The notes beneath the pieces are model-generated. The model was not told where the DNA came from. It saw nothing but the letters and a program-made list of their open reading frames with translations, and ran no database searches. A program made the translations under genes and the position numbers. Shown here in pieces: positions 1 through 56,700 of a DNA stretch of 64,000 nucleotides (the stretch's first letter is position 1; each line of letters opens with the position of its first letter). This stretch comes from Cyanophora paradoxa CCMP329 (taxonomy: Eukaryota > Plantae > Glaucophyta): NCBI GenBank assembly GCA_004431415.1, contig QPMI01000122.1, forward strand, positions 62,001 through 126,000, written 5' to 3'.

Positions 1-10
1 CCGGCACCCT

Positions 11-49
11 GAAAGCTTTCATGAAAGCTTTCTGAATTCGAAAGCTTTC
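11..49. repeat. Three copies of the palindrome GAAAGCTTTC; 11-32 is a perfect 22-bp palindrome
   Basis: gaaagctttc-at-gaaagctttc-tgaattc-gaaagctttc, read directly. Confidence 0.8.
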
Positions 50-3354: not shown

Positions 3355-3859
3355 TCTGTTGAAGCTTTGTCATCATCATCCAGCTTTCATGTATCGTCGG
3401 CTTCACTCTGTAGATGTACATAACTATTGCCGTAGTGCTGACATGATGCATGAAGCGTGTTTTAGCTGTGCACGATATCTGTGTAGTACAAGATTGTTAC
3501 CTTGAATGCTAGTTCGAATTTTCTTCGATGCTGAGGTATTGCATCACGGCTTTCTGCCGTCAGGAGCCGGTACTGCTAGCTTCTGCAGCGCCTGCGCAGA
3601 GTGCTCTCATTACACCCCCACTACTTTTCATGTACCCCGTTCCGGGTCCTTCCCCCGGGCAACGCACTTGTACCCGGGCACTTGCTCTTGCTCTCAGAAT
3701 CATTGAATACTAGCTCTGCTCGCCCTAACTCGTCTGCATATAGATGCTATAGATGCAAAAATGATGAAAACGATCGCGATCGCAAGTTTCAAGATTGCGA
3801 CCCCAGAATTCGAATCCGATCATCGGATCGCGATGATCTCTAGCTATAGCTAACTATAG

Positions 3860-16567: not shown

Positions 16568-17864
16568 TGAGAAAAACGATCTCCGTCATTCGATGAGCTC
16601 AAACGCTAACCGATGAAGCACTGCACTGCACTGACTGCACAGAACAGCGGTGGAGCTACGGGTACTGTCAGGTCCGTCAGGTGACACTCATCTGCGAGCG
16701 TCGCGCTTGATCGTGAACCCCGCGCGCGGGTCGGTTTGGAGTCCGCCGGGCCTCATGATCACGCGTACCGCGAGCTCGAGTGGCATGGCCATGGCCGGTG
16801 CTAGCCGTTCCTTTTCGGTGCCAGCCGTTTCTTCAGGGAATATATATATATATAAATTTGATCGATATATATCGATATCTGTGCATGCGCAACGTTTAAC
16901 GATTGGAATTGCAACTTGGAACCGTTATAATTAACGTTATACCTTGTTGTACGTTGCAACTGACACATCGTCTCGATCGCTTTGCAATTGTACAATATTT
17001 CTGGTGCAAGCTAGCTGCCATGGCCATGCCAGGCTGCGCATGCGGCCGATTAATATTTTTGCAATTCGTGCTCATGCGCATGCCGCCAAACGTATACGTA
17101 CGGGCGTTGCTCCGATGATCCGATGATCTTTTCTTTGTTCTTGTGATTGCGAGGGATATCATCATCAGTCCTGTCGACGTCCAGGAACAACATGCAACAG
17201 CTGCGCATATGCATGCGAGCTAAGCCTTGAAGGTGAATGCAATTGCAAAATAACTTTAGTAATCCGATGATCCGATGATCAGCTCCAGCCTGGCCATGGG
17301 CAGCTGCACAGGGATGATCCGATGATCATGAACAGCGCCATCAGTATGCGCTAACAGCGCTAAAATTTCAAGTTTGAAGGGGTTCATGATCATCGGATCA
17401 TGATCACTTTTCCGATTCAAAGAACAATCATTGACTAGTACTGGCACAATATCAATGAGGCTCGCCGAGTCGACGTCGGAAGGAATTCGAAGTGGCCCAG
17501 TACTAGTGGGTGAATTCATGATCAATTGCAATCCACACACTCGAAACTTCACTGAGTCGGCTGCAGACACATTCTAGATCTATACGTACGCGTGAATTCG
17601 AAGGTTCAATTGCTCTAGGCATTTATGAAAGTTCGACGGTTGCAATTGATCTAAGAAGACCGTTGGACCCGTGACCATCGGATCAAGAGCCACTCATGAT
17701 ATACGTAGTTAGCACACTCATCACTAAGTCATTAGAACTTCGGCCAGTTTACCCCAGGGCCGCCTTTTCCAAGCCACGATGAGCCACGATAGCGAGATTC
17801 CTGCGAAGCAACAGGAAGCGAGGCTTCCAGGAGAGCCGTGCATAGCAGCAGAAAATTCGAGTCC

Positions 17865-18872
17865 CTAGATGCCAGACACCTGGATGACAGCCGTGCGCGT
17901 GCGGGGCCCGTCAAGGTCAATGAGCATCACGCTCTGCCACGTCCCCAGGGCCAGCTTCCCGTCGAATACTGCAGCAAGAAGGTCGGTCAGGGACGTGGTG
18001 GGCTGGCACAATGGGCGGGTGCAAAGAGGACCCGGGATGGTCTCGGACTGGGAGAGGGTCATGGCCTGCAGGTGGGACTGCGCGTTGATGGGCTCGTCCT
18101 CGGGGATCCCTGGCCGCAGGTGCAGGCTACCGCCCCAGGCTCATGCTCAGCGGGCCAAAGCCAGTTGCTTCAGGAGCCTCGGAGAGGGCAGGGGACGCAC
18201 TCGTTGTGGAGGTAGTGCAGGTCCTTGGGCGAGCCTTCCGCGCCCTCCTCCGGGGCGAGCTTCCGCAGGTACGCCTTGATGTCCACCAGAAGCCGTTCCT
18301 CGTCCTCGTTAATGTACACCGCCGTCGTCGTGTCTGGTGCCAACGGAGCGTGAGGGCCATGGGCGGGCTGGAGCCGCTGAGCGAGGGTTCCGAGCACACG
18401 GCGGCTGAAGACCGTGGCGGTGCCGTTCTTGACGCCGGCCTCCTCCAGCAGCTCCTTAACGTATGGCGTCAGGTTCACGTACGATCTGCGCCGGGTGCGC
18501 GCGACGCGTACGGTCAGCTCGACGTTGACGGCGAGCGCGGCTGGCAGGAACTATACACGCGCATTTGGTCGTCCTTGCCCGTCTCTAGCGTCAGGACCTT
18601 CGTCGCTACCTTGTACTCCGCAGCTGGCCTGCGGTTGATAAGCTTGGCGTGTGCCTTGCGCTAGAGCTCAAGACGCACGCGGATGCCCTCACGGTGGCAT
18701 CGGCCGCCGCAAAGAAACGCGGCCGCGCCGCATTGGCCTCGAACCGGGTCGCGCGCAGCCTCGAACTCGAGCCCCCAAGCCGGCAGACGAGGCTGCGGCT
18801 CGACACGGAAGACGAACAGACGAGCGGCGCTGGCACGCCTGCGCGGGCGGGGAGGCTCGATACGAAGGCCAT
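17865..18872 (-). CDS. YjbQ/UPF0047 (secondary thiamine-phosphate synthase family) protein with plastid transit peptide
   Basis: NLTPYVKELLEEAGVKNG, TTTAVYINEDEERLLVD, NAQSHLQA, GKLALGTWQSVMLIDLDGPRTR; Ser/Ala/Arg-rich presequence MAFVSSLPARAG. Confidence 0.9.
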
Positions 18873-24488: not shown

Positions 24489-25620
24489 CTAGTCGCGGCG
24501 CAGCGAGGCGAAGGCGGCCGCCCAGGAGGCCGGCGGGGCGGCCGGCGGGGCGTCGGGGGCCCGCTGCACGAGCTCGAAGGTCGTCCCCGGCGGGCACGAC
24601 GCGAGCGCCTCCACGCACGCCAGCGCCACGTCCTGCGGGGCCCCGGCGTGGGCGGGCCGGGGCAGGGGTACGGGGGGCGGGAGGGGGGTACGCGGGTGCG
24701 GACCTCGCGGGAGACGCGGCCGTTGATCTTGTCCCCCTGGTCGAGGACGAGGGCGGGGAGGCCCTGCGAGGGCTCCATCTGCGGGCACCGGCGCCCGGGC
24801 CCCTCGGGTCAGATGCGGGCGGGGGCCTGGGGCGTGCTTGCAGCTGCGCATGCGGACCGTGAGGCCGCCGGGCCGGACGATGACGTACGGCACGCCGCTC
24901 TTCCTCAGATACGCCTCGCCTTCGCTCTTCCAGTGCATCACGCTGGCGGGCGGCGCGGCAGCAGACGTCAGCGCCGCGAGCCGGCGAGCTTGGGCGAGGA
25001 GGGGTCGGCGCGGGCGGACCGGCCCATGAGGGAGTTCAGGAGGATGTAGATGAAGGAGCTGGGGCGGGTGATGGCGAGGGTGCTGACGAGGACGAACTTC
25101 TCGACGCGGGCGGCCTTGGCCGCGTCGACGAGCGTCTTCAGGCCCACGTACTCGACGTCGTACGAGCTGTTGCTCCCGAAGAAGTCCCAGCCGCTGCCGC
25201 CCTGGGCGCACACCACGTACTTCGCCCCGCTCATCGCCTTCGCGACGTCCGCCGCGTTCTGCGAGACGCCCTCCTGCTCCCGCGCGCGCGTGCGCTCGTC
25301 GGCCGAGACTCCGGCAGGAAGCGCGCTCACTCAGCGCACGCGCGCGCGCACCACAATCTCGACGTTGGACGCGGCGGGGCCCAGCGTGCTCGAGGCCTTC
25401 GCCGCCGAGCGGGCAAAGGCGCGGACTGCGAAGTTCTTGGCCGCCAGCTGCCTCACCGCGAACGCGCCTGCAGCGCAGCGCGTCATTACGCATGACGGAT
25501 CGCCGCAGCGGTCGCGCGCTATATAGCTATGCGCCGGGTCGCGGCGCGGAACTCGGACCCGTCGACACGCGCACCTGTCCGGCCCGTCGCGCCGACGACG
25601 AGGACCTTCTCGGCTCCCAT
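24489..25620 (-). CDS. Atypical SDR / NAD(P)-binding Rossmann protein (Tic62/SDR_a5-like)
   Basis: KVLVVGATGRTG, VEYVGLKTLVDAAKAARVEKFVLVS, WKSEGEAYLRKSGVPYVIVRPGGLT, GRVSRE-DVA. Confidence 0.9.
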
Positions 25621-37988: not shown

Positions 37989-40497
37989 ATGGGCACGCGC
38001 AGCGCGCTCCTGGCGCTGCTGGCGTACGCGCTAGCTTTCTCCATCGTCGGTGAGGGCCCCCGGCCGGCGGTTCGAACCGCGCACATCCGCTGCGGCTAAC
38101 GCACCGCCTTCGCGCGGCCGCAGGCGCGGCGGAAGAGAACTCGCTTATTGCCGATGCGGGTCGCAACATGGCGGTCACGCTTCCGGCCGAGAGCGTGAAG
38201 CTGTACGGGAACGGCGGCTACGGCCCCGGCTTCCACGGCGAGGGGATGGAGTACCGCTGGGAGCAGGCGAGCGGGCCTGCCGTGCAGGCACAGGGCACGA
38301 ACGCGCGGCAGCTCGTCCTCTTCCCCGTGGAGCCTGGCCGCTACGTCTTCCGGCTAACGGTTGTGGACCCCGAGAACGACAACGCCGCCTCCGACATGGT
38401 CGAGGTCGTCGTGACGGGCGGTGCGGCCGGCCGGGCGCGCGTGCGCCGCCGCCGCGGGCCCGGGTTGAGCGGGCGCCGGCAGAGAGCGGGGCGCCGGAGG
38501 TCGACGCCGGTCGCGACGTGACGGTTGTGCTGCCCACCAAGTCCGTGCAGCTCGTCGGCCAGGCCCGCGACCCCAACAGTGCGCCCCGCCGCCCCTTCCA
38601 CGCGCCGGGGCGCCGCCGAGCGGGCCGGCAGCGCCGATGACGTACCTGTGGAAGTTCGAGAAGGGCCCCGGGCTGGTCGGCCTCGCCGGCAAGGAGTCCC
38701 GCACCCTCCAGGCGCGCCCGCCCCGTGCCCCGCGCCCCACCCGCCCCGGGCCCGCCCCGCCGATCTTGCGCGGTCCGACCCGGCGCGCCCGCCCCGCAGG
38801 TCATGTTCGTCAACCCGGTCGAGGGGTGCGGCCCGCCCGCCCGCCCCGCTCCTCCCGCCCCGCCCGCCCCCCGCCGGAGCCGACGCGGCGGCGGGCCGGC
38901 GTGCGGGGCGCAGGGTGTACGAGTTCTCGTTCACGGCGACGGACGCGACGGGCCTGGCCTCCACCGACACCGTCAACGTCGTCCTCCAGCAGTGTACGGC
39001 CCCGCGCCGCCCCCTCCGCCACCGGGCCCGCCCCGCCGCGCCCTGCCGCGCCCTGACGCGGCGGCGGGGCGCAGCGAACCGGGCGCCGAGCATCGTGCCG
39101 GCGGCGGCGGTGACGATCATGTGGCCGCAGAACGAGGTGCAGCTCTCCGTGGAGGCGTCGGACGAGGACGGGCGCGTCGCCTCGTACGCGTGGCGCCAGG
39201 TCGAGGGGCCCCCCGCCGAGATCGCCGGCGCCGACTCCCCCACCGCCTCCATCCGCCTCCCCCGCACCGTCCGCCCCGCCCCGCGCCCCGCCGGCGTTCA
39301 GGAGCGTTCGGGCGCTGATGGGGGCCCGGGGGCAGGGGAGCTACGCGTTCAACGTGACGGTGACGGACAACAACGGCGCCTCCGCCGAGGAGTCCTTCCC
39401 CGTCTTCTGCGGCCAGCGTCCGCCCCGCCCCGCCCCGAACCCTCGCCTCCGCCGCTGCTGAAGGGGGCCCCCACTTGCGCAGCGCCGGCGGTGGTGCTGC
39501 AGCCGGACGTGTACGTGATCTGGCCGCAGGACAGCGTGAAGCTGGTGGCCCAGGTCAACGGCGCGGCGGCCGGCACCGAGTACCTCTGGCGCGTCGAGTC
39601 GGGCCCGAGCGTCGTGGGCCTGGGCGGCAAGTTCTCGCCCACGCTCGACGTCTTCAAGCTGGTGCGGGGCACGTACGAGTTCAGCCTGACGGCGACGGAC
39701 AAGGCGGGGATGAGCACGAGCGCCCGCACCACCGTCCGCGTCGTCGAGCGTGCGCCCCCCGCCGCTTCCCGCCCCCGCCGCCGGCGCGCGTTTTCCGGGC
39801 TGACGATGGCGGGGGCGCCCCGGGCAGAGCTGCTGCGGCCGCGCGTCTCGGCGGGGCCCGACGTGGACCTGCCGTACCCGCAGAACTCGGTGCAGCTGCA
39901 GGCGCGGGCGAGCGACGAGGACGGGCGCGTGTCGCGCATCGAGTGGGCGATCGAGGGCGGGCCGGCCGGCAAGGTCAAGATCGCGGGGCGGGACTCCCCC
40001 GTCCTCACCGTCGCCGACCTCGCCCAGGGCACCTACCTCTTCTCCGTCACCGGTAACCCCCCTTCCGCTCCGCCCCTCCCCCCGCCCCGCCCCGGCCGAG
40101 CGGGCGGCGCGCAGTGTGGGACGACATGGCGCTGAACGCGACGGACGAGGTGCTCGTGCGCGTGCGGGACGCCCGCGGCGAGGTCGCCCCGCTCCAGTCC
40201 CGCCGCTCCGCCCCGGGCGCCGACGAGGCGACCGGGCCCCGCGTCGGCCGCGCCGGCACCGTCCTCGTCATCGTCCTCTGCGCCGTCCTCGGCCTCGGCG
40301 CCGCCGCCTGCGTCGGCGTCTTCTTCTGGGAGCGCCGCCGCCGCGCCCAGGAGGAGGCCCGCATGCAGGCGCAGCGCGCCGGCGCCATGCCGCCGCTCGG
40401 GCGGCGCGGCCCCGGGGCCAAGCCGACCTCCCCGGGCCCCGTCTCCGCCAAGGAGGCCACCAGCTACAAGCCCTTCACCTTCTTCGACAACCTGTAG
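37989..40497 (+). CDS. Type I membrane protein with 4-5 PKD-like repeats (KIAA0319/AAVR-like architecture)
   Basis: Signal peptide MGTRSALLALLAYALAFSIV; repeats AGxDVxxxxPxNSVxL..DxDGxxxxYxWxxxxGP..GxYxFxLTxTD; TM GTVLVIVLCAVLGLGAAACVGVFFW followed by ERRRR; tail YKPF. Confidence 0.85.
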
Positions 40498-40682: not shown

Positions 40683-43283
40683 TCAGCGGGCGGCGCGGGC
40701 GGCGGCGGCGGCGGCGGGGTCGCCGGCAGAGGCCGTCCGCTCCGGCTTCGAGTTGCGGAAGTGCAGCTTGGACTCGTAGTACGCGATCACCTTCATCGGG
40801 TCCCGCTGCACGCTGGCGTCAGGGCGGACGCGGGGCGACAAGACGGGCGCGGGGCGGCGGGCGCTGTGACGGGCCTTGGCGACGTGGAGGGAGGGAAGGG
40901 CCTCCTGGCGGGTGCTGCCGTCTGCCAAAGTGTACTTGACGACCAGGTTGATGGTGCCGTCGGGCCCCTTGCGCGCCGTCACGATCTCCGTGATGCTCGA
41001 GTCACTCCCCAGCTCCTGCGCACGGCCCCGCCCGCATCGGACCCGCGTCCCTCCGGCCCGGCCCGGCGTGTCGCGCACGGGGTGCTCGAAGGTGGGGGCC
41101 GTCTGGACGGAGGTCGAGCGCAGGTTGTTGGACTTCTCGAGGCTCGTGCCGCTGATCGAGTTCGGCTCCGGGGCGCCGTCGCCCCCCGTCACGTCGAAGA
41201 CGACGTCCCCGCCGCGGGCGGTGTTGTCTACGGCCGCCCGCGGGGACTTGCCCTTGTCGATCATCACGCCCACGCTCCCCGCCGGCTCCAGGCTGCCCTC
41301 CTCCTCCGCCCGCGCCCCCCCCTCCGCCCCCTCCACCTTCACGCCGCCCGCCGGCGCGGGCGCAGGCGTCGAGTCCTCGCTGAAGATGTCTTTAACGAGG
41401 ATGGCCGTCCCCTCCGCCACGACCTGATCCTCGGCCGAGGGCGCCGGGGGCGCCGCCGCCGCCCGCTGCTGCTGCGCCTGCTGCCCCGCGCTGCCCGCCG
41501 TCTGCAGGCCAGCGGAAGGCACCGATTGCGGCGCCGCGCGGGCCGGCGCCTGCGGCGCAGGGCGGGCCGGCGCCTGCGGCTGGGGGATGGAGCTGTTGCG
41601 CTCGAGGGGCATGTTCGACTCGCCGACGACCTTGCCGCTCTCGTCCACCTCCCGCACGCGCGTGTGCTCCCCGAAGCTCACCTGCGCGCCGGCGAGGCGG
41701 TCAGTCTCGGGGCGCCCCGGGCCCCGCATGGCGGCCACGCCGCGCACCCGCGAGCCGCTGCCGGACTTGGTGAGGCTGGAGGAAGGGGTGAGGGGCGCCG
41801 CGGGGGCGGCGGGGGCGCCGGTGCCGTCTGCCTCCTCGAAGACGCCCTTCTCGCGCAGGTCCGGCAGGCCGCCCGCCTTGCCGCCCGCCTCCGCCGCCGC
41901 CGCCTCCGCCGCCGCCGGCTGCGCGCTGCCCGCGGCGGCCGCTGCGCCCGGCGCTCGGGCTCGAGCCTTCAAGTTCCGCGGGCCACCGCCGGCGGTGCCC
42001 CCGCCGAGGGCCGCCGGGGCCGAGGCGGAGGAGGTGACGGGTGCGGCAGGAGGGGAATCGCGGGTGTGGAGGGGACGGCGGGGGCCGAGGAGGCGGGGGC
42101 CTGGGCGGGCGCCGGGGCCGGGGCGGGCTCCGGGGCGGCGGGGGCGTGGGCGGGCGGGGCGGGCGTGAAGTCCTCCTCGGGGGCCGCCGCGTCGCGCATC
42201 TCCGCGTCCGCCTTCGCCTCCGGCCGCGCCTCCGCCCCGCGCCCTTCCTCGCCCTCCTCGCCCGTCTTCCGCCGCTTGCCGCGCTTGTCCGACAGGCCCT
42301 CCGACACGGGCTCCTGCGAGTCGCGGAGGCCGTGCCGCTTCCCCTCCTTCTTCTCCTCCTTCACCTTGCCCTCCTTCTCCTCCGTCTTGGCCTTGGGCGG
42401 CCGGCCGCGGCCCCGCTTCGCCGGCTGCGCCGGCTTCTCCTCCTTCTCGTCCTCCTCCGTCGCCCCCCCGTCCTCCTCCTCCTCTTTCGCCTTCTTCGCC
42501 TTCTCCTCGCGCTCCTTTGGCTTGGGCTTCGGCTTCTCGTCGTCCTCCGTCTCCTCATCGTCCTCCTCCTTCACATCCTTCTTCGACGCGCGCTTCGGCT
42601 TCTTCTCCTTCTCCTCCTCCTCCTCGGACGACCCCTTCTCGTCGTCGCTCGCCTCGGCCGTCTTCTTCCTCTTGTCCTTGCCCTTCTTCTCCTTCGACTC
42701 GTCATCACTTTCCGAGGCGCTCTCCTCGCCGCCGCTGGACGCGCCCTTGCTGCCACGCCTGCCCGTCTTGGTCGCGCCCTTCTCGGCCTTATCGGCCTTC
42801 TTCTTTTCCTTGAGGGCCTGCTGGAACTCCTTGAACACCTCCAGTTCTTTCACGTGCGACAGGGGCTCCCATGTGTTCGCCGATTCGGGCCAGCCCTCCC
42901 ACTTCACGAGGTACTTCTTCTGGCCCTACGCTCGGAGTGAGCGGCGAGCGGGAGGATCAAATGTCGCGCGTCCGAGTCAACCGATGCCGGCAGGCGACGC
43001 GGCTGCGAACCTTGACAGTTCTCACTTCCACGATTTTCTCGACGACGTACTCTGCCTCCTGCTCAGAATCGCTGTCGTCCGCATTCGACCCGCGCTTCCG
43101 CTTGCCAGTCTCCGCCGCTTTCTTTCCGCGGCCCCTCTGCAAGGGCGCAACGACTTGATAAGCGAGAGAGCTAACCGTACACGCGCGCTCGGGCAGATCG
43201 CTTGCCTTCGTCGGCTTCTCCTCGCCATCTGAGCCGGAATCCGACGCCGGATCCTCCTTTGATGCTTTCTTGCCTCTCGCCAT
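40683..43283 (-). CDS. HP1/LHP1-like protein: chromodomain + AT-hook + chromoshadow-like domain
   Basis: EYVVEKIVEVR..KYLVKWEGWPESANTWEPLSHV (aromatic cage present); KRGRGRPPK; ITEIVTAR..LVVKY..DPMKVIAYYESKLHF. Confidence 0.85.
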
Positions 43284-43511: not shown

Positions 43512-46500
43512 AGCGCGTCTATCCGTATCACGTAGACGTAGGCCAGCACGCACACTCGCGCGAAGAAAGAACGCTTGCCGGGGGTGGACTACTGTGGGGG
43601 TAGAGTGCGTTCCTGGGGTCGAGGCCACAGCGGCGCAGGCGGGATGGAGGCCACCGCGTTTTTGAGCTCTGCGATAGCGGTTGGTACCGGACGTTCACGG
43701 ACGCTGGCGGGCGCGGATGCCGGGACGATTTGTATCTCGACGGACGCGACGCCGTTGAGGTCGTCCGGAGGCTCGAAACATCAGCGCACTTTCTTTTCTG
43801 GGTCAGCGGCGGCGTCCCTTTCCTGGTTGCCGAGGCGAGCTGGCGCGAGCCGACGAATCCCCGCTGCGCCTGTGTCCCTGGATGCGGTCGCCTCTGGAAC
43901 CCGTCCTAGAGCAGCTCGGGAGACGGGAGAGGAACCACGGAATCGCGCGCGCAGGGCGCCGCGCGTGCCTGCTGCGGGCCCGTCCACGTCGTCCGCCCAG
44001 CCAGCGCAGCGCGGGCTGACGGACAGGCAAGTCACCACGTTGGTGCGCCACTCCTCGCGCGACCCGCGGCAAAGCCCGCGCGCAGCGATGCGGGCCTGAC
44101 GAGATTCCGGGCCAGATTCGATCGGCGGCGACTGCAGAGGCGGCGCTGGGGGCGTTCGAGCTGCTCCCGCGGGCCGGCAGGAAGAACAACCTCATCCACC
44201 ACAACGCGCTCCTCAAGGCCCTGGTGCCCCGCACCGCCGCCGCCCCGCCCCCACGTGCCGCCCCTCGGCTAAGCTCCCGCGCGCAGTGCGGGGCGCGCGC
44301 GGTGGACCGTGCGCGGGACGTGCTGGAGCGCATGGAGGCGGCGGCCGGCGGGGGCGCCGGCGCGGCGGACGCGTGCGCGCCCGACGTCCTCTCGTACAAC
44401 ACACTCGTCGCCGGTGCGGCCGCCTCCTCTGCCCGCCCGCCCGCCCCGCCCGCCCGCCGGCGGCCGGGTCCGACGGGGGCGGGGCGGGGCAGGCTACGCG
44501 AGCGAGGGGCGGGTGGAGGAGGCGGAGGCGCTGGTGGCGCGCATGCGGGCGGCCGGCGCGGCGCCCGACGCGGTGACGTATAGCACGCTCGTGCACGCCT
44601 GCGCCCGCGCCCTCCCGCCCCGCATGGACCTCGCCGAGAAGGCCCGCCCCCCCGCCGTCCCTTTCGCCCCGCGCCCGCCCCGGGCTGACGGCGGGGGCAG
44701 ACGGTGGCGGAGATGCGGGCGGCCGGCGTGCAGCCGAACCTCGTCACCTACAACGTGCGCCCCGCCTTCCCGCCCCGTCCCTGCGCACCGCCAACTGGCG
44801 GGCGGGCGGGCGGCAGACGCTGGTGCACGGGTACGCGGCGGCGGGAATGGCGGCGGAGGCCCTCGCCACCCTCCGCGCCCTCGTGCGGCCCGGCCCCGCC
44901 CCCGCCCTCGCCTCCGACCGCCGACGGGCCTGGCCGGGCAGGAGGGCGAGCTGGGGACGGACGTGACGACGTGGAACGCCTGCCTGCACGCCTGCTTCCG
45001 CGCCGCCCGCCCCGAGGCCGTGCGCCCCAACCCGCCCCGCACCGCCCTGGCCGGGGCCGCCCGCCCACGCCCCGGGGCAGGCGCAAGCGCTCTTCGACCG
45101 GATGGAGGGGCGCCCGGCCGCGGGGCCCGCCGCGGGGCCCGGCCCGCCCCGCCCCGCCCCAACGCCGTCACCTACAGTGCGCCTCTCGCCTCGCTCGCGG
45201 CCCCGCCGTGCCGCGCCGGGCGGGGCCGACGGGGCGGCAGGCACGATGATCGGGGGCCTGTGCGACGCCGGCGCGCCGGGGCCCGCCCGCGCCCTCCTCC
45301 GCCGCCTCGTGCGCCTGCCCGGCCCGCCCGCCCCGCTCGCCGCCAACGCGCCGGGCGCGCAGGCGGCGGAGGGGGCGCCGCGGCCGCTCCGCGCGGCGGC
45401 GACGACGGCGCTCCTCGACGGCCTCCGCCGCGCCGTGCGCCCCGCCCCCGCCCCGCCCCGCCCCGTCCCCCGGCCTCCCCTCCTCACCCGCGGCGCAGGG
45501 GCGGGCGGAGGAGCTGGCGGAGGCGTTCGAGGAGGCGGAGCGGGCTGGCCTGGCGGACGCGCGGCTCTACGCGGCGGCGGTGGCCGGCCTGGCGCGGGGC
45601 GGGCGGCCGGCGGCGGCGGAGGCGGCGCTGCGGGAGATGCGGCGGCGCGGGCACGCCGCCGGCGAGGCGCTCTTCGGGGCCGTCCTCGACGCCTTCGTCG
45701 CGGCGGGGGACGGCCCCGGGGCCGACCGGCTCCTCGGGGCCCAGCGGGAGGCGGGGGTGCCGTGCGGGGACGCCGTGCGGCTGACGGCGGCGCTGCGGTG
45801 CGGCGTCTCGCACGGGCGCGCGATGGAGGTGTTCCGGGACCTGGGCGAGGGGGCGGCCTGGCTCGCGGCCCTCCGCCCCGACGCCCGCCTCTACACCGCG
45901 CTCCTCGAGTCCTGCGCCCGCGACCGCAACGCCCGCGACGCCCGCGCCGTCTTCGCCGCCGCGCCCCGCCCCGACGCCGTCCTCTGCGGGCCCGTGCCCC
46001 CTCCTCCCCCTCTCTTTCCCCCTCCCTGCGCCCCTGACGCCCCGGCGCAGGGTGATGATGCGGGCGTACCTGCGCTCGGGGCTCCCGCGGGAGGCCCTCG
46101 CCCTCTTCGACACCCTCCGCCGCGAGCGCCGCCTCGCCCCCACCGCCGTCCGCCCCGCCCCGCCCCGCCCCCGTCCCGGACTGACGGCCCTCTCTGTCTC
46201 TCTCTCTCTTTCGGCGCAGTCGTGCTACGCGGCGGCGGTGGACGCGGCGACGCGGGCCGGGGACGGGGCGCGGGCGGCGGGCCTGGTGCGGGAGATGCGG
46301 CGGGCGGGCCACCGGCCCTCGGCGCGCCTCTACAACGTGGCGATCCAGAGCCAGGGGGCCCTGGGCCGCGCCGACGCCTGCTTCGAGCTCTACGAGGAGA
46401 TGCGCGCCGCCGGCGTCGCCCCCACCGCCCTCACCCTCTCCTCCCTCATGGCCGCCTGCGTCCGCTCCGGCGAGCCCCGCCGCGCCCTCGGCCTCCTCCC

Positions 46501-48099
46501 CGCCGTGGAGGCCCTCCCGCCGGCCGAGCGGCTCGACACGCGCGCCTACAACGGCCTCCTGCGCGCCCTCGCCGCCTCGCGCTGCGGCGCCGACGAGGCG
46601 CTCGCCCTCCTGCGGCACCTCTCGAGCCTCGGGGCGCGCCCCGACGAGGAGACCTGCGCGCTGCTCGTCGAGGCCTGCGTGCAGGCCGGCCGCGCCGGCG
46701 AGGCCCTCGCGGCGCTGCGCGAGATGACGGCCGCCGGCGTCCGCCCGACGCCCGTGACGTACAGCAGCCTCGTGCGGGCCCTCGCGGGGAGCATGCAGCA
46801 GGAGGCCGCCTTCGGCCTCCTCGCCGACATGCGCGGCGCGGGGCTCGAGGGCGACGCCCGCGCCGCCCGCCGGGCCTACGGCGCGCTCGTCGAGTCGTTC
46901 ATCGCGAGCGGCGAGCCGCTGCGGGCGCTGCTGGGCCTGCGGGAGATGGAGGAGCGCGGCCTGCCGCCGCCCCGCGCCGCCTTCGAGCGCCTCATCGACG
47001 CCTTCTCCGGCTCCGAGCGCGTCGACGAGGCCTTCGCCGTCTTCCGGTACCCCCCGCCCGCCCCCCCCCCCTCCCTCTCTTCGGGCCTGACGGGGGGCGG
47101 GGCGCAGGATGATGGAGGGGGCGCTGGGGGGCCCGACCCCGCGGGCGTACGGGGCGCTGATCGAGGCGCTGGCACGGGCGCGGGAGCCGCTGCGGGCGAC
47201 GCTCGGGCTGCGGGAGGCGGAGTCGCGGGGCCTGCGCCCCGGGCTCCCCACCTACGACCGGGTGGTCCAGCGCCTCGGCGAGGCGCGCGAGGTCGACGCC
47301 GCCTTCGCCGTCCTCGGCCGCATGCAGGCCTCGTACCCCCGCGCCCCCGCCCGCCCGGGCGCCTACGCCGCCCTCGTCGAGGCCTGCGCCGGGCGCGGCC
47401 TGCTGTTGAAGGCCCTCCTCGGCGTCGCCGAGCTCCAGCGCGCCCTCGACGCCGGGGTCGGCGCCGCCGCCCTCCCGCCCGCCGCCGCCGCCGCCGCCGG
47501 CGAGGGGGCCGCCCCGGACCGGCACCTGCGGCGGGCGTACAGCGCGGCGCTGGCGGCGCTGACGGAGCGGGACGCGGGGGACGGGTACGAGCTCTACCGC
47601 GCGGTGCGGCGGCGCTGGGGCCTCGAGCCCGACGACGCCGCCCTCGCCATCCTCCTCTCCGCCCACCTCGACGGCTCCCCGCTCCTCCGGCCCATCCCCC
47701 CCCCCCCCCCCCCCGAGCGGCCCCCCTCCCCGGCGCCCCTCCTCCTCCCCGCCTCCGCCTCCCCCCCCCCCGGGGACGAGAGCGGCCTCCTCCTCCCCAC
47801 CGCCCTCTTCGCCCCCCGCGGTCCCACCCCCGCCAAGCCTTAGTGCTGCCCTTTCAAAGGTCCGGTTGGATGTCGTCCCTGCAGCATCGGCGCACCCGCT
47901 CATCAGGTTTTCAAGCCCTCGTGTGTCTTTTACAACTTTCAAGCTTTTTGCATATTGTGTGTCCGATGAATCATGTACCTTTGTCTCGGGAGATCTAGAG
48001 GAATAGATTAGACCTTCAGGTAGTGTGTGTTGCCATGTCGTGTGCATGTCACCCTTGCAGTTATGATGTTTTTTTTTTTTTGAATATTTCAACTTGCTA
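43512..48099 (+). repeat. Segmental direct repeat, copy 1 (PPR gene plus flanks)
   Basis: Aligns to 53705-57825, from agcgcgtctatccgtatcac to caacttgcta. Confidence 0.93.
43644..47843 (+). CDS. Organelle (probably plastid)-targeted pentatricopeptide repeat (PPR) protein, intact copy
   Basis: Presequence MEATAFLSS..; 35-aa motifs PDVLSYNTLV, PDAVTYSTLV, PNLVTYN, DVTTWNACL, PSARLYNVAI, PTPVTYSSLV. Confidence 0.9.
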
Positions 48100-48215
48100 G
48101 GGCTGAATTATGAACGGCACTGAAAACTTCCGATGACCTGATTACGAGCACATCGGAGCAATCATAATGAAAACATTATGGGTCATTACGCCACAACGCG
48201 CCTTCACCTTGAGAG

Positions 48216-50019
48216 TTAGGCAAAAAGTTGGGAGAGAAACCCTAAAATACCGTCGAAAGAAATACATGCTGTGTCCTCAGCATCAGATGTATCTTCTGCA
48301 CCTCCAATCACGCTGGCGCCTTCAGAACAAGCACTCTCCACTTCGCCACCCCTTGCCACAGATCGCGGGGCCGCCACGCCCGCTGCTGCAGCCTCGCCGC
48401 CCGTGGACCCGCCATTGCCCCCCGCCTCTGCCCCATTGCCGCTTGCCGTTGATCGCGGGGCCGCTACGCCCGCCGCTGCAGCCTCGCCGCCCGTGGACCC
48501 GCCATCGCCCCCCGCCTCCGCTCCGCTGCCGCTTGCCGTTGATCGCGGGGCCGCCACGCCCGCCGCTGCAGCCTCGCCGCCCGCGGACCCGCCATCGCCC
48601 CCGGCCTCTGCTCCGCTGCCGCTTGCCGTTGATCGCGGGGCCGCTACGCCCGCCGCTGCAGCCTCGCCGCCCGCGGACCCGCCATCGCCCCCCGCCTCCG
48701 CTCCGCTGCCGCTTTCCGTTGATCGCGGGGCCGCTACGCCCGCCGCTGCAGCCTCGCCGCCCGCGGACCCGCCATCGCCCCCCGCCTCCGCTCCGCTGCC
48801 GCTTTTCGTTGATCGTGGGGCCTCCACGCCCGCCGCTGCAGCCTCGCCGCCCGTGGACCTGCCATCGCCCCCCGCCTCGGCTCCGCTGCCGCTTGCCGTT
48901 GATCGCGGGGCCGCCACGCCCGCCGCTGCAGCCTCGCCGCCCGCGGACCCGCCATCGCCCCCGGCCTCCGCTCCGCTGCCGCTTGCCGTTGATCGCGGGG
49001 CCGCTACGCCCGCCGCTGCAGCCTCGCCGCCCGCGGACCCGCCATCGCCCCCCGCCTCCGCTCCGCTGCCGCTTTCCGCCGATCGGGGTGCCGGGGGGCT
49101 CGTAGGATCCTCCGATTCCGAAATGTTTTTTTCAGTTGCCTTGGCAATTGCCTCCTCGTACCCGCCTGTCGATGGGCCCACGTCCAACCTAACGAGCGGT
49201 TTTTGCTCGAGATCGAACTGGCGGTGGCGTTAAAAGGGGAGGCTTGAATAGGAAGCGTAGCAGAGGCGCAAGGCACACGTGGTTGCGCTGTTTTGCAATC
49301 CCCAGACCGTGAGTAAAGCTCTGCAGCCCGCAGCGCCACGTGCAGCAACCGTCCACAAGCACTCGCGCGCCAGGATCTGCCCTCACTCCTGTCCGACCCA
49401 CCTCGTGCAAGTAGCAGCGTCTCACCTGGGCGCACATTGAAAAAATAGAAAGATAGCGAAAATATACGGCCAGAACCTCGCAAAGAGCTGCCTTCTGAAT
49501 CCAGATGGCTTCTCCGTCACATGGGCCCACGTCGCAGTTCTCGATAACAGCACGCGCGCCCGTGCCGCCCTCGATAATGACTGCGCTGGTTCGGGGCGCG
49601 GATGCTTGCAGCCGGCACCGAGTGATCCGAAGCTCGCCTTCCTCAGACTCGCTCCAACAAAGAGCGCCTTTTACGAGAGCATCCTTTGGTATGCGGACAT
49701 CACACCGATCGAAAATGCATTTGCCGGCGCGTACGTTCAGTTCCGCGCCGCCGACGATCGTCAAGTTGACAAAAGTGATTGTGCTGCCTGTTCCAGCACG
49801 CAACTCAATGGTCGGTCTGGAAAAGTCGTGCGAGCGTATAGATGCATTACGGCCTACAATCGTAAGCTGAGCTTCGGCCGGAATAACCGCCGAGACGTTT
49901 GCATCAAGCTCGCCGACCACTACGACGGTGCCTGCCCATCCGATCGCTTCGCCTGCAGCATCCAAGCTCTCGTACGCGTTGTCAAATTGGTGCCGAGACA
50001 CCAAGACCAGCGCTCTCAT
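48216..50019 (-). CDS. Right-handed beta-helix (pectin-lyase-like) protein with a Gly/Ala/Ser-rich 30-aa repeat tail
   Basis: ITFVNLTI, CIFDRCDV, LRITRCRL, AVIENCDV, VRRCYL, VLVDGC beta-helix rungs; two GT-AG introns (~49426-49476, ~49218-49279) splice in frame into the repeat ORF 48216..49187. Confidence 0.65.
48361..49085. repeat. 90-bp tandem repeat, 8 near-identical copies
   Basis: gatcg unit starts at 48361, 48451, 48541, 48631, 48721, 48811, 48901, 48991 (partial at 49081). Confidence 0.97.
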
Positions 50020-50057
50020 GAATTCAATTGCATCGGTACCCCCTGACGACACACCTC

Positions 50058-50129
50058 AGTGACACCTGAGTGACACCTAAGTGACACCTGACACGGTGTC
50101 ACGGAGGCTCGTGTCAGCCGATCGTGTCA
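50058..50129. promoter_or_regulatory. TGACAC motif array in the divergent promoter (4 forward + 3 reverse copies)
   Basis: AGTGACACCT(G/A) x3 at 50058-50090; TGACAC at 50089; GTGTCA at 50096, 50111, 50124. Confidence 0.6.
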
Positions 50130-50277
50130 GTCAGCTGCTGCTCAGCGGCAATCGCATCGACAGATCGGGGGTCGACTGGTTGTTGTTTGCGGCAAGCGCT
50201 GCGGCCTACAGGTGATCGTAGATGCACGCAGGAATGATCGCTTTGAAGATTATCGCAAAGTATGACACAAACCGTAG

Positions 50278-52427
50278 ATGGCGGGCGCTAAAAACTCATA
50301 CGTTGTGAAAAGGCAGCTCGACTTTCTGGAAGACGATGCCATCTATGCGCAGTTACAGCAGTGGATCGGATTTCCGTGCGCATGTTGTGTTTGCTATTTG
50401 CTTCGTAAGCACTGTGTTGGTTATTTTTCTGACAAAGCGCTAGATTCACGTTTTCAAAATTGTACGAGGCATCGAGCCTCAACAACACTGTTAGCGGACC
50501 AGCTTTCCATTCGGCTTGCGATAATAAAGGTCCTACGATTACTATAGCTCGTATGGGGACTGGTCACATCATTGGCGGATTCACAATGCAATGCTGGGCA
50601 AAAGTGCAATTTCATTTCATCAATTTCCTGTACTGAATTCGAATTTAATTTTGGAACTGCATTTCGTAGGGTGCAACTGTGAGTGGAAGTTACTCTTGTG
50701 GCGAAGATCGACTTGCGTTTATTTTTGCTCTTTGTGGTGCAAATGGCCTCATGAAACCGATTCTGGGGCGGATCAAAGAGGCGAACTACAAAACAGCCAT
50801 TTTGCGTGCAGATAATTGTGGACCAACCTTTGGTCTTCCGCAAGCAAAGGATTGCTACAGCTATCCTGATTTAAGCTCTGTTGATCTTTCTTTCTTCAAC
50901 AATCAGTGGAAATTCACTGCACGTTCATTTTGTTATTCCATTCCTGCAAACACGTTTCCTCCTGATGGTACTGTGGTGGAGAGACTGGAAGTTTACAGTG
51001 TTGAACTTTCCCTGGATGGTGGTAAGTTGTGGTGGCTTTAAGATGGTGGTACTAGTGTGGTACAGCTGACAGCTTGCAGCTTCTCTTGATTTTAGCCAAC
51101 TTGAAGTTTCGACTGGCCCAAAAGTAAAGCTCTGGCAGAAGCTATCATTCAATGAGAAGTCTGCAATTTGCCTCCACTTCTGTGTGGCCTTTACTCAGTC
51201 TGCATCAGGTCTCGAGACGAGCTGCTTGCAAAACTCCGTTCTCGCAAACCCAAGGGTGCTGAAAGGCTGCATGTACCCGCATATAACATTCTTCTTTTCG
51301 CTGGTGTTGGTGCTGGTTTGCCCCTTCTTCCTTCCCTTCTCCATTCCCGGCAACCAACCACCGTGAACAGGAAAATCATCATTTGTCAACACGCTGGACA
51401 CTGCACTGCGTGGGCGCCTGTCTTCTATTGCAATGGTTGGAAAGGGGTCTCGATCCATCACTTCAATTCTTGCAAAGCGCCGCCTGCACTCGACTGCTGC
51501 GATCAACCTTTGGGATACAATGGGTGTGTTTGATTTTCTGCTCATTTTTTTCATTTATCCACCAGGATGCAACAGGATTCACGGTAGAAGTCGAAAAGAA
51601 GATGGAGTTTACTCAAATGTTTCACTATCTTGTAAGTGGCAATCTTGTGGATAACTTCGACCTGTCCAAGTTTGTATTGCTCTGGGTTTCAGTTAAATCT
51701 GTTTTTCTTCAGTAAAAACTCATGTTTTCTTCTGCACGCAGGGAGATTTTGGTTGACACCCCTGGCATTGTATGATGTCTTCTGAATTTGAAACTTTTGC
51801 ATGTCTCTGAGTCACTTGTGTGCCTCACAGAATCTGGCTCCAACATTGGCCGACCGGGTGCATATTGTTGCACTTCTGGTCCCAGAGGAGAGTGCTTCAG
51901 ATGATGTGTACATGGGGCGACTTTGCGAGTTTTTAAAAATTACAAATAAGCCTAACATAGGTGTGTTGGTTGCTTGTTTTAGTTGCTTGCACGATTGCGA
52001 GTCGAACTCTACTTTTTTGCATAGCCAAGGTGGTGGTTCTCCTGAGCAAGGTGGACAGGGCAGACCCAGCTTTGCTTGAGGATGATCTTTCGAAGGTCGA
52101 CTCCAGTGCTCGTGTTGCTGAACGGCGAAAGCTCATCGCACAAAAGGTGTAAATGTCGCTGTTCTATTTCCAAAGAAGCTTACCAAGAAGCCTTTAGGTC
52201 GGTTTACAACCATTTATGGTTATCCCTATTAAGAACTACTATGAGGAAGGCTCTCCTGATGTTGCTGTGGATGTGCTCGCTTTGGATGCGCTCTGGTGCA
52301 CTTCTTCCCTGCCCTTGGACCCAAATGCATGTGTTTGACGGTGTGAAACAGGCGTATGCTGGATTGTGCAGACGATTTCTTGGTAGAGCAGGCACGGATC
52401 ATGGGTATCAAAATTGATGAAGACTGA
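50278..52427 (+). CDS. IFI44/IFI44L-like protein (N-terminal TLDc + C-terminal P-loop GTPase)
   Basis: TLDc: KLYEAS..FHSACDNKGPTITI..IIGGFT..AFIF..GPTFG..LEVY. GTPase: NILLFAGVGAG|KSSFVNT, LWDTMG, PTLADRVH, VVVLLSKVD, VIPIKNY, LDALWRMLDCADDFL; about 10 introns. Confidence 0.9.
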
Positions 52428-52519
52428 TGTTGAATGCCATAATGCAAAAGTACATTACATGTACATGACTGCACGCTTGGAGAAAAGTAAAAGTAAACTT
52501 GGTTAATGCAAAATTTGTA

Positions 52520-53552
52520 TCATGATGCGTATCGAATGAGCTGATCTGCAAGGTCGCCAATGAGTTTTTTATTCTGTTCAGCAGAGAGCAAGGTCGCAGG
52601 AGCTATGTCATCAAACACGGCATCAAATATATGGCCACATCGTCCACGTCCTTGAACAGCTGCAAGAGCCTCCGAAACGTATCCCTCGCACTGAAATCTG
52701 GATATTACGCAGGATAATCTGAAATCGAGATCAGTAAAAGATACCTTGCCCTCGACTGGACTGCTCTGCCCTTCAATTGCAACCTGGTGCATGAAGACCA
52801 CAATCCGCGCTCGGGCATCTGAGAGAGTCATTAAGCTCATTTTATGCCGAGTGTTCGAACGATAAGTACCCTGAGAGACTTGTTGAAGGCGCAAGGTGAC
52901 TTCCTCTGGCTGAATTCGCGACTCAGAACGGTAGAAGAGGATAATGGCATCTGCTGATGCATCCGACGTCTGTCCTTCCCCATCGAGCAAGAGCTCCACT
53001 TGACGATCCAGCAGGATACGCCGAACCTCTGCCATAAGAACACGAGTGACGTCGGTTCTTTTGAATTCAAGCGTCCCACGGACAGCAGTGCGGACTTGAA
53101 CTGCGACAGAGTAAGAGAAGAGACAACAGCCGAGCCAAAACAGTGCCAAACCTCTCTTCAATCTCGGTGGTGGCACGGGCGGAGCTGAGAAGTGCCGATT
53201 CTGTGCGCCCATCCGAGGCGGTACCAATTCCGGTGCAGAGCACAACGCCCGCACGGAAGAGCTGTAAGGGGCAATCGGCATCCTGCTGTCTTGGCGCAGC
53301 TTATCGATCTCGTCCATGAGCGCTAGAACGAGCTCGCTTAGTAGCGCATCCTGTTCACGTAGCGCTTCAAGCGCTCCATGAAAGCTGAACTCTGATCGAG
53401 TCTGCGAGAGCCGTCGCTCTCGCAAAATTGGGGCCAATACACAACATTTGAACCTGGCGGAGCGTTCTGATAGCCCAGGCGATTGCCTCTGGAGTGCGCG
53501 CTTGTCTGCGATGATCTGCCTCGACACCTGGTCGACTGCTGCTTATGCCCAT
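52520..53552 (-). CDS. Putative N-myristoylated protein: short coiled coil, Pro-rich linker, TIR/flavodoxin-like alpha/beta domain
   Basis: Spliced start MGISSSRPG..; PPVPPPR; ADAIILFYRSESRIQPEEV..ARIVVFMH..IFDAVFD..LLSAEQNKKLI. Confidence 0.6.
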
Positions 53553-53704
53553 CTCTGTCTGCCCACGCATCGGATGTCTTATGTGATCTTATATCTGCAT
53601 GCGTACGTTTGACGGACTGCTAGCTGCGTCAAAAAGGCACCACGTCAAAGGCACGACGACGAGCAGCTCGTTCATCAGCTAGCTCAGCAGCTAGTCTAGG
53701 GTAC

Positions 53705-56700
53705 AGCGCGTCTATCCGTATCACACAGACGGGGTGGGCACGCACCATATGTACACGCGCGAAGAAAGAACGCTGGTCAGGGGGGACTACTGGGGGGTAG
53801 AGTGCGTTCCTGGGGTCGAGGCCACAGCCGGGCAGGCGGGATGGAGGCCACCGCGTTTTTGAGCTCTGCCATTGGTGCTGGACGTTTGTGGACGCTGGCG
53901 AGTGATGCCGACGCAATGAGAACAACCTCATCCACCACAACGCGCTCCTCAAGGCCGTGGTGCCCCGCGCCGCCGCCGCCCCGCCCTCACGTGCGGCCCC
54001 TCGGCTTAGCTCTTGCGCGCAGTGCGGGGCGCGCGCGGTGGACCGGGCGCGGGCCGTGCTGGAGCGCATGGAGGCGGCGGCCTGTGGGGGCGCCAGCGCG
54101 GCGGACGCGTGCGCGCCCGACGTCCTCTCGTACAACACACTCGTCGCCGGTGCGGCCGCCTCCTCCGCCCGCCCGCCCCGCCCGCCAGCGGCCGGGGCCC
54201 GACGGGGAACGGGGCGGGGCGGGGCAGGCTACGCGAGCGAGGGGCGCGTGGAGGAGGCGGAGGCGCTGGTGGCGCGCATGCGGGCGGCCGGCGCGGCGCC
54301 CGACGCGGTGACCTACAGCACGCTCGTGCACGCCTGCGCCCGCGCCCTCCCGCCCCGCATGGACCTCGCCGAGAAGGCCCGCCCGCCCGCCATCCCCGCC
54401 GCCCCGCGCCCGCCCCGGGCTGACGGCGGGGGCAGACGGTGGCCGAGATGCGGGCGGCCGGCGTGCAGCCGAACCTCGTCACCTACAACGTGCGCCCCGC
54501 CTCCCCACCCCTTTCCTGCGCATCGCCGACGGGCGAGCCGGCGGGTGGACGGGCGGCAGACGCTGGTGCACGGGTACGCGGCAGCGGGGATGGCGGCAGA
54601 GGCCCTCGCCACCCTCCGCGCCCTCGTGCGCCCCGGCCCCGCCCCCGCCCCGCCCCCGCCCCGCGCCGCCGACGGGCTTGCAGGAGGGCGAGCTGGGGAC
54701 GGACGTGACGACGTGGAACGCCTGCCTGCACGCCTGCTTCCGCGCCGCCCGCCCCGAGGCCGTGCGCCCCGCCCCGCCCCGCCCCGCCCCGCTCTGGCCG
54801 CCCCGCTCACGCCCCGGGGCAGGCGCAAGCGCTCTTCGACCGGATGGAGGGCCGCCCGGCCGCGGGGCCCGCCGCGGGGCCCGGCCCGCCCCGCCCCCGC
54901 CCCAACGCCGTCACCTACAGTGCGCCTCTCGCCTCGCTCTCGTGGCCCCGCGCGCCGCGCCGGGCGGGGCGGACGGGGCGGCAGGCACGATGATCGGGGC
55001 CTGTGCGACGCCGGCGCGCCGGGGCCCGCCCGCGCCCTCCTCCGCCGCCTCGTGCGCCTCCGCCCGCCACGCCCGCCCCGCTCGCCGCCAACGCGGCGGG
55101 GCGCAGGCGGCGGAGGGGGCGCCGCGGCCGCTCCGCGCGGCGGCGACGACGGCGCTCCTCGACGGCCTCCGCCGCGCCGTGCGCCCCGCCCCGCCCCGCC
55201 CCGCCCGGCCTCCCCTCCTCACCCGCGGCGCAGGGGCGGGCGGAGGAGCTGGCGGAGGCGTTCGAGGAGGCGGAGCGGGCCGGCCTCGCGGACGCGCGGC
55301 TGTACGCGGCGGCGGTGGCCGGCCTGGCGCGGGGCGGGCGGCCGGCGGCGGCGGAGGCGGCGCTGCGGGAGATGCGGCGGCGCGGGCACGCGGCCGGCGA
55401 GGCGCTCTTCGGGGCCGTCCTCGACGCCTTCGTGGCCGCGGGGGACGGCCCCGGGGCCGACCGCCTCCTCGGGGCGCAGCGGGAGGCGGGGGTGCCGTGC
55501 GGGGACGCCGTGCGGCTGACGGCGGCGCTGCGGTGCGGCGTCTCGCACGGGCGCGCGATGGAGGTGTTCCGGGACCTGGGCGAGGGGCGGCCTGGCTCGC
55601 GGCCCTCCGCCCCGACGCCCGCCTCTACACCGCGCTCCTCGAGTCCTGCGCCCGCGACCGCAACGCCCGCGACGCCCGCGCCGTCTTCGCCGCCGCGCCC
55701 CGCCCCGACGCCGTCCTCTGCGGGCCCGTGCCCCTCCTCCCCCTCTCTTTCCCCTCCCTGCGCCCCTGACGCCCCGGCGCAGGGTGATGATGCGGGCGTA
55801 CCTGCGCTCGGGGCTCCCGCGGGAGGCCCTCGCCCTCTTCGACACCCTCCGCCGCGAGCGCCGCCTCGCCCCCACCGCCGTCCGCCCCGCCCCGCCCCGC
55901 CCCCGTCCCGGACTGACGGCCCTCTCTGTCTCTCTCTCTCTTTCGGCGCAGTCGTGCTACGCGGCGGCGGTGGACGCGGCGACGCGAGCCGGGGACGGGG
56001 CGCGGGCGGCGGGCCTGGTGCGGGAGATGCGGCGGGCGGGCCACCGGCCCTCGGCGCGCCTCTACAACGTCGCCATCCAGAGCCAGGGGGCCCTGGGCCG
56101 CGCCGACGCCTGCTTCGAGCTCTACGAGGAGATGCGCGCCGCCGGCGTCGCCCCCACCGCCCTCACCCTCTCCTCCCTCATGGCCGCCTGCGTCCGCTCC
56201 GGCGAGCCCCGCCGCGCCCTCGGCCTCCTCCCCGCCGTGGAGGCCCTCCCGCCGGCCGAGCGGCTCGACACGCGCGCCTACAACGGCCTCCTGCGCGCCC
56301 TCGCCGCCTCGCGCTGCGGCGCCGACGAGGCGCTCGCCCTCCTGCGGCACCTCTCGAGCCTCGGGGCGCGCCCCGACGAGGAGACCTGCGCGCTGCTCGT
56401 CGAGGCCTGCGTGCAGGCCGGCCGCGCCGGCGAGGCCCTCGCGGCGCTCCGCGAGATGACGGCCGCCGGCGTCCGCCCGACGCCCGTGACGTACAGCAGC
56501 CTCGTGCGGGCCCTCGCGGGGAGCATGCAGCAGGAGGCCGCCTTCGGCCTCCTCGCCGACATGCGCGGCGCGGGGCTCGAGGGCGACGCCCGCGCCGCGC
56601 GGCGGGCCTACGGCGCGCTCGTCGAGTCGTTCATCGCGAGCGGGGAGCCGCTGCGGGCGCTGCTGGGCCTGCGGGAGATGGAGGAGCGCGGCCTGCCGCC

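Follow-up and report, generated by a model that had tools for sequence, protein, structure and literature searches.

An intron-rich gene of Cyanophora paradoxa predicted to join an N-terminal TLDc domain to an IFI44-type GTPase

Results

In a 64-kb stretch of DNA from Cyanophora paradoxa CCMP329 (contig QPMI01000122.1, positions 62,001 to 126,000 of the forward strand), which we call the window and number from its first letter, positions 50278-52427 of the plus strand probably make up one intact, intron-rich nuclear gene in which a TLDc domain is followed by a P-loop GTPase (the TLDc-GTPase gene). The predicted product has 481-485 amino acids (aa), or slightly less; exons 1-3 would supply its TLDc domain, at the N-terminus, and exons 5-12 its P-loop GTPase domain, at the C-terminus, with a short linker between the two. 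A preliminary description had taken this locus for a full-length IFI44/IFI44L homolog concealed by introns. Judged from the sequence, there is good support for a single spliced gene in which an IFI44-type GTPase follows a TLDc domain, and the designation as a full-length IFI44 homolog is partly supported: architecture and GTPase family speak for it, whereas the TLDc half finds its best match in Anaeramoeba and the IFI44 name itself is a tentative one.

As had been proposed, the gene is visible to a scan for open reading frames (ORFs) only as fragments, none longer than 121 aa in the ORF list of the window, and it is restored by splicing; it thus provides a practical case of a gene missed by ORF-based scanning. 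In a model with 12 exons and 11 introns, a single frame runs from an ATG at the start to a TGA at the end of the segment, giving a coding sequence of 1458 nucleotides (nt) and 485 aa. All 11 introns are of the GT..AG type, with lengths of 40-85 nt and a guanine plus cytosine (GC) content of 32-56%, the splice sites are all intact, and the exons contain no stop codon. Retention of an intron introduces a stop in seven of the 11 cases; the length is a multiple of three in just three introns, each of which carries a stop, so that the frame would be broken whichever one of the introns were retained. Allowing for uncertain parts, the gene has 10-12 exons and 9-11 introns, and the earlier estimate of about ten introns therefore holds as a range but not as an exact count.

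The TLDc half begins with exon 1 (50278..50375), which holds the ATG, 32 codons and two bases of a split Pro codon, ends at a GTGCGC donor and provides the lead-in to the domain; having no profile support, it counts as the least secure of the long exons. Exon 2 (50444..50603) would encode the first part of the TLDc domain and exon 3 (50670..51021, 117 codons, donor GTAAGT) the rest of it. The linker may include exon 4, a candidate micro-exon of 28 nt (51096..51123) set between TTTTAG and GTAAAG sites and flanked by introns of 74 and 85 nt, but this exon is uncertain, as it can be replaced in frame by one 177-nt intron (51022-51198).

The GTPase half opens in exon 5 (51209..51315), which carries the end of the linker and, with NILLFAGVGA and one base of a Gly codon, the first half of the P-loop, and continues in exon 6 (51371..51525, preferred end 51523) with the second half of the P-loop (the remaining GA bases of that codon, then KSS), a candidate switch-I Thr (SIT) and the G3 motif DTMG. 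The P-loop is thus split by an intron, as originally noted: the Gly codon preceding its Lys is divided G/GA by the phase-1 intron 51316-51370 (intron 5). Assembled across it, the G1 motif A-GVGA-GKS-S fits the pattern [AG]x4GK[ST], with Ala rather than Gly in first position. Exon 7 (51566..51669, preferred start 51576) covers the region after G3. We prefer the 51523/51576 junction, which removes a GT..AG intron of 52 nt and yields a product of 481 aa, because otherwise the DATGF at the start of exon 7 would duplicate the DTMGF of the family that is already present at the end of exon 6; at the preferred junction DTMG is followed by Phe, at the first junction by Asp. Exon 9 (51831..51960) encodes the PTLADRVHIVALLV strand region (PTLADRVH), exon 10 (52025..52146) the G4-like SKVD, exon 11 (52198..52295) the PIKNY .. 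LALDAL segment and exon 12 (52352..52427) the predicted C-terminal helix MLDCADDFL and the TGA. All motifs quoted in the preliminary description are accordingly present and in place, from the TLDc signature of exons 2-3 and AGVGAG followed by KSS to the ADDFL of exon 12.

Between exons 7 and 9 lies exon 8 (51742..51769), a second candidate micro-exon of 28 nt encoding EILVDTPGI. It is in frame and has good sites, yet is uncertain, as it can be skipped in frame if exon 7 ends at 51673. Its inclusion fills a gap of 11-12 residues in the alignment to the GTPase family described below. The peptide resembles a second, more canonical G3 (DTPG; profile positions 91-98), about 70 codons beyond the DTMG of exon 6, and could be an exon-duplication relic, an alternative exon or a product of chance.

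One could argue that the segment comprises two genes, or a decaying relic, with a protein consisting of TLDc only and with GTPase exons that are separate or dead. Retention of intron 3 would indeed lead to a stop at 51039-51041, and the model is at its least secure in the linker, whether this is spliced through micro-exon 4 or by the 177-nt intron. However, the gap between exons 3 and 5 is only 187 nt, intact splice sites and stop-free exons are at odds with decay, and no ATG occurs ahead of the P-loop in the frame of the GTPase part, which argues for both domains being encoded on one transcript. We thus consider this alternative very unlikely.

Homology was tested exon by exon, with separate exon peptides in Pfam, PDB, profile and MAFFT comparisons alike. 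Exon 2 alone matches the Pfam TLD model PF07534 at profile positions 36-76 with 23.9 bits (gathering cut-off 24.5; expectation value E 4.6e-5), and exon 3 alone has no Pfam match. Among 1.84 billion representative proteins, exon 3 has two matches at E<=0.001, the better of which (E 2.9e-5) is P0001, a RING-kinase protein from Anaeramoeba ignava that contains five TLDc repeats and itself scores 263 bits on PF07534; the second, a cohesin protein, looks spurious and was set aside. One and the same TLDc repeat of P0001 accommodates both exons, exon 2 at residues 754-801 and exon 3 at residues 814-920, and it is these two matches taken together that lead us to accept the TLDc domain. When a profile built from the five P0001 repeats was run on all 1702 six-frame stop-to-stop peptides of the window, exon 2 ranked first (E 2.6e-5, profile positions 31-81) and exon 3 second (E 1.9e-4, positions 89-139), with the third-ranked peptide at E 14. 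Both exons precede every GTPase exon, and the TLDc domain is hence N-terminal.

The GTPase exons are of small size, with the P-loop divided between two of them; singly, they match nothing in Pfam, PDB or PHROGs, and exon 6 has no relatives in viral contigs and no match by word-indexed protein search. Relatives were fetched with a degenerate DNA pattern for G-x-G-K-S-S-F-x-N ... D-T-M-G, spanning G1 to G3. In viral contigs and prokaryote genomes the pattern gave chance matches only, none homologous to any exon; in metagenome contigs (JGI and ENA assemblies) it retrieved five natural relatives, L015-L019. One of these, L017, contains an ORF of 541 aa with two tandem GTPase domains, the first of which is the best match of exon 6 (36% identity) and is not the domain that the fetching pattern had selected. 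L017 led in turn to seven unnamed proteins, P0123-P0129, all from ENA sample ERZ25070167.

A profile of 285 positions was built from the first domains of P0123-P0129 and run on the same 1702 peptides. Exon 6 ranked first (33.7 bits, E 2e-9, profile positions 40-98) and exon 11 second (10.0 bits, E 0.033, positions 228-255), followed by exon 9 (positions 141-184, stopping where exon 10 starts) and exon 10 (positions 185-215); the match that comes next is to the P-loop exon of BMS1. Exons 5 (positions 26-41), 7 (positions 94-125) and 12 (positions 257-275) fall at their expected places, and all GTPase exons are colinear on one strand. Since the profile positions run on across the junctions (41/40, 184/185 and 255/257), they provide independent support for the corresponding splice sites. 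In MAFFT alignments the seven exon peptides (5, 6, 7, 9, 10, 11 and 12), entered as separate rows, were laid end to end along the family, with SKVD of exon 10 aligned to TKID/THVD, exon 11 to FPIQNY..LAL and exon 12 to ILRLAD(N/D)TL. The same profile recognizes the ORF of L019, a vertebrate-looking exon, with 85 bits (E 1e-27), whereas three other relatives, the DTMGFPDPDP GTPases of L015, L016 and L018, match only its N-terminal third (positions 24-109). The latter restriction suggests that the C-terminal motifs DRVH, SKVD, PIKNY, LAL..AL and ADDFL are specific to the family that the exons share with L017 and L019.

We tentatively take L019 and the motifs of this family to be of the IFI44/IFI44L type; no search result bore that name, and PDB contains no IFI44 sequence. 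The L019 ORF differs from both human IFI44 and human IFI44L at many positions. In Pfam the relatives match generic GTPase models (MMR_HSR1, RsgA), with weak matches to Septin and AIG1, and PDB holds no sequence close to them, offering only weak matches to septin and Toc34. An AlphaFold model of P0129 residues 1-290 (predicted local distance difference test score 84.8) has mitofusin, IRG proteins (IIGP1, Irgb10, GM4951), GIMAP2/7, septin and EF-Tu as its nearest solved folds, at TM-scores (TMq) of 0.34-0.47 and, for GIMAP/AIG1, IRG, septin and mitofusin, a Foldseek probability of 1.0. The weak PDB matches and low TM-scores suggest a distinct TRAFAC-class GTPase family that lacks a solved member.

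These same matches could be held in favor of the C-terminal domain being an ordinary GTPase of the AIG1/GIMAP, septin or IRG type, with the P0129 model placing the predicted fold nearest to such proteins at TM-scores of at most 0.47. Yet the exons give zero matches to the AIG1, Septin and MMR_HSR1 models even at E<=10, exon 6 alone reaches 30-34 bits on the L017/L019 family profile, and the C-terminal half, with DRVH, KVD, PIKNY, LAL..AL and ADDFL, fits that family over a region into which the DTMGFPDPDP proteins do not extend. An ordinary GTPase thus appears highly improbable, and at the level of exons AIG1 and septin, named at the outset as competing assignments, did not emerge as better profile matches.

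Two observations concern the relatives themselves. In ENA ERZ25070167, positions 1-13100 of contig L023 hold two intact tandem-GTPase genes and at least eight fragments matching the profile, forming a local array with decayed copies, and contigs L022 and L024 also carry tandem-GTPase relatives; these contigs have about 39% GC and look eukaryote-like. L015 (44-553, plus strand), L016 (151-1296, minus strand) and L018 (503-1105, minus strand) form a second, more distant GTPase family with the motifs GxGKS(T/S)FLN and DTMGFPDPDP; L016 has in addition a long, charged, coiled-coil-like tail, and all three look like metatranscriptome contigs of protists or animals.

The window alternates between stretches of 75-87% GC and islands of 46-56% GC (1-4000, 14000-18000, 48100-53800 and 58000-64000), and the TLDc-GTPase gene lies in the third of these islands. 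It is a strong compositional outlier: its GC content at third codon positions (GC3) is 0.45 and its introns have 42% GC, compared with a GC3 of 0.93-0.98 for BMS1, 40 kb away. Such an extreme split, 0.45 versus about 0.95 inside 40 kb of one genome, could reflect either an isochore-like structure or foreign DNA. The island sits exactly between the two copies of a direct segmental duplication of about 4.4 kb (43600-48081 and 53793-57814, 88-99% identical, spacing about 9.73 kb), each of which carries a gene with PPR repeats. No paralog of the TLDc-GTPase gene was found within the window.

It is perceivable that the whole 48.1-53.8 kb island was acquired recently from a eukaryote of lower GC content or from a nuclear, intron-bearing virus. 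The gene departs not only from BMS1 but also from the PPR and PKD ORFs (GC3 0.81-0.88), its neighbors within the island share the low values (GC3 0.52-0.58), direct repeats frame the island on both sides, and intron-rich mirusviruses of protists have been described (PMC12768974). However, no viral, transposon or donor relative of the gene was found in the viral, metagenome and PHROGs scans, the island is devoid of transposon or viral hallmark genes, and the other low-GC islands of the window suggest that the genome itself may have two GC classes. Moreover, the introns resemble in length those of the resident BMS1 gene, whose short introns have GTGCGA-type donors like introns 1, 2 and 11 of the TLDc-GTPase gene. 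On this evidence a recent foreign origin seems somewhat unlikely. Prokaryotic or phage origin was rejected, given the spliceosomal introns and the lack of prokaryotic relatives.

Upstream, an ORF of 287 aa on the minus strand (49189-50052; Pfam Beta_helix, 26.8 bits; GC3 0.58) is divergent from the TLDc-GTPase gene across 225 base pairs (bp). This intergenic region contains, at 50051..50102 and 180-225 nt upstream of the ATG, three tandem copies of the 11-nt motif GTGACACCT and one inverted near-copy; no further exact copy is present in the window, and the cluster is possibly a cis-regulatory element or a group of binding sites. A GACACGGTGTC palindrome is also found in this shared region. A tandem repeat with a unit of 90 nt (48246-49175; about 8-10 copies, 91-94% identical, 80% GC) lies directly against the beta-helix ORF at its 3' end and may belong to that gene; it is open in several frames, Pro/Ala/Ser-rich on the plus strand and Gly/Ala-rich on the minus strand. 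Downstream, an ORF of 335 aa on the minus strand (52520-53527, GC3 0.52), with no Pfam or PHROGs match, converges on the TLDc-GTPase gene with 92 bp between the stops.

Among the more distant features, BMS1 (7775-12773, minus strand), a ribosome-biogenesis GTPase, has several introns, short and GC-rich, as well as long inserts of low complexity. Its best database matches, from fungi and plants, are only 45-52% identical, indicating that the protein collection holds no close relative of the organism. Other coding pieces with high GC3 at 38054-40135 (plus strand), 41972-42925 (minus strand) and 24971-25330 (minus strand) show K319L-like PKD domains, a chromo domain and an NAD(P)H-binding fold. 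None of these domains, nor the PPR repeats, is diagnostic of the organism; the PPR genes are the window's one hint of a photosynthetic host. No tRNA or Rfam match was found in the window, and no record of its ORFs was found.

Discussion

The model proposed here, one spliced gene with a TLDc domain ahead of an IFI44-type GTPase, has to accommodate several observations that weigh against it. Exons 1, 4 and 8 gain no support from homology, and exon-based scans of metagenome, viral and prokaryote collections found no ortholog. The sole credible match of exon 3 among 1.84 billion proteins is a TLDc domain that is not of the IFI44 type, and the same exon has no relatives in viral or metagenome contigs and matches nothing in PDB. 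The G4-like SKVD keeps the Asp but has Ser in place of Asn/Thr and is non-canonical with respect to [NT]KxD. Finally, the antiviral effect of human IFI44 is independent of the G1 region (10.1101/2020.02.24.963900), and GTPase chemistry may thus not be the point of these proteins at all.

The nature of the TLDc half bears directly on whether the gene is an ortholog of IFI44 over its full length. A canonical TLDc domain could have been fused independently to an IFI44-type GTPase by domain shuffling, which would produce the IFI44 architecture without orthology. This would explain why exon 2 matches the general Pfam TLD model, why the search with exon 3 ended in an Anaeramoeba repeat with nothing IFI44-like at E<=0.001, and why the closest GTPase relatives (L017 and P0123-P0129) have no TLDc domain either in the protein or nearby. 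It is also consistent with the great divergence of the IFI44 TLDc domain, which is only about 15% identical to others (PMC5614904). On the other hand, the order and spacing of the domains are the same as in IFI44, and a single exon is a weak probe of a fast-evolving domain, with one such search having been made. We regard an independent fusion as rather unlikely.

With the G1 motif, the candidate switch-I Thr, the G3 motif and the G4-like SKVD all intact, binding of a guanine nucleotide by the product is plausible. The GTPase domain would belong to the same sequence family as the metazoan-like GTPases that we tentatively take to be of the IFI44 type, and the protein could work as a guanine-nucleotide-dependent switch, or as an oligomerizing GTPase, that carries a TLDc module and might contact the V-ATPase through it. 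By analogy with virus-induced animal IFI44, our best guess would be a role in stress or defense.

Homologs of IFI44 are reported to be induced in antiviral responses of cnidarians (PMC13319465). In the literature we found nothing relevant on IFI44 in algae or protists, and IFI44 peptide strings had no match in full-text articles. It is conceivable, if doubtful, that the IFI44 architecture predates animals and has been kept intact in a distant, GC-rich protist, or else that the gene arrived together with its introns by transfer between eukaryotes or by way of a virus. Were the architecture indeed pre-animal, IFI44 would be one more ancient defense module of eukaryotes, alongside viperin, cGAS-STING and GBPs, and its mechanism would become open to study in a microbe. 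How IFI44 and IFI44L, both in wide use as interferon-signature genes, work at the molecular level is still poorly understood. With its G motifs intact, a microbial copy would provide a simpler system in which to approach both nucleotide binding and the suspected link between TLDc and the V-ATPase.

Of the known systems, IFI44 and IFI44L (TLDC5), the interferon-induced protein 44 family of vertebrates, come closest in architecture. Human IFI44 has about 444 aa, a size similar to that predicted here, and the order of the C-terminal motifs is the same in IFI44 as in the Cyanophora gene. In both, an N-terminal TLDc domain is followed by a predicted GTPase with a G1 of the form GxxxxGKS and a G3 of the form DxxG plus a hydrophobic residue. 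In a comparison of TLDc proteins from yeast and human, IFI44 was the only one with the domain near the N-terminus (10.1101/2025.05.24.655954). G1-G4 motifs have been predicted for both IFI44 and IFI44L, where DxxG is followed by Leu, a hydrophobic residue instead of the catalytic Gln, and the guanine-specificity motif G4 is present in IFI44L and incomplete in IFI44 (10.1101/2020.02.24.963900). The P-loop lies beyond the TLDc domain in both cases, at about residues 244-251 here and at residues 193-201, the position of G1, in human IFI44 (10.1101/2020.02.24.963900). The differences are that the host is GC-rich and non-animal-looking, that an interferon system is not expected, that the TLDc half is nearer to canonical TLDc domains, as seen from its match to PF07534 and its best match in Anaeramoeba, whereas that of IFI44 is the most divergent of all (PMC5614904), and that the gene has SKVD as its G4 and 9-11 short introns.

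The tandem proteins L017 and P0123-P0129 are the closest relatives of the GTPase half, which is colinear with them at profile positions 26-275 of 285, with identities to P0129 of 15-39% per exon. Together with L019 they share with it the motifs GAGKSS, DTMG(F/L), D(K/R)VH, (T/S)K(I/V)D, P(I/M)(Q/K)NY, LAL..L and LAD..L. Unlike the TLDc-GTPase gene, they have two tandem GTPase domains and no TLDc domain, and are encoded by single-exon genes on contigs of about 39% GC, in multiple copies in one sample.

GIMAP/AIG1, IRG (IIGP1, Irgb10), septin and mitofusin are akin to the family at the level of the predicted fold, and several of them are immunity GTPases acting by nucleotide-dependent dimerization. 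They differ from it in their low TM-scores, in their sequence identity of 11-20% and in Pfam models that the exons do not match.

Finally, OXR1, NCOA7, TBC1D24, TLDC2, mEAK7 and yeast Oxr1p and Rtc5p share the TLDc signature of exons 2-3, but have the domain at the C-terminus and no GTPase domain. TLDc proteins bind and regulate the V-ATPase in yeast and mammals (10.1101/2025.05.24.655954), and this property of the canonical proteins suggests the V-ATPase as a candidate partner for the TLDc-GTPase product as well.

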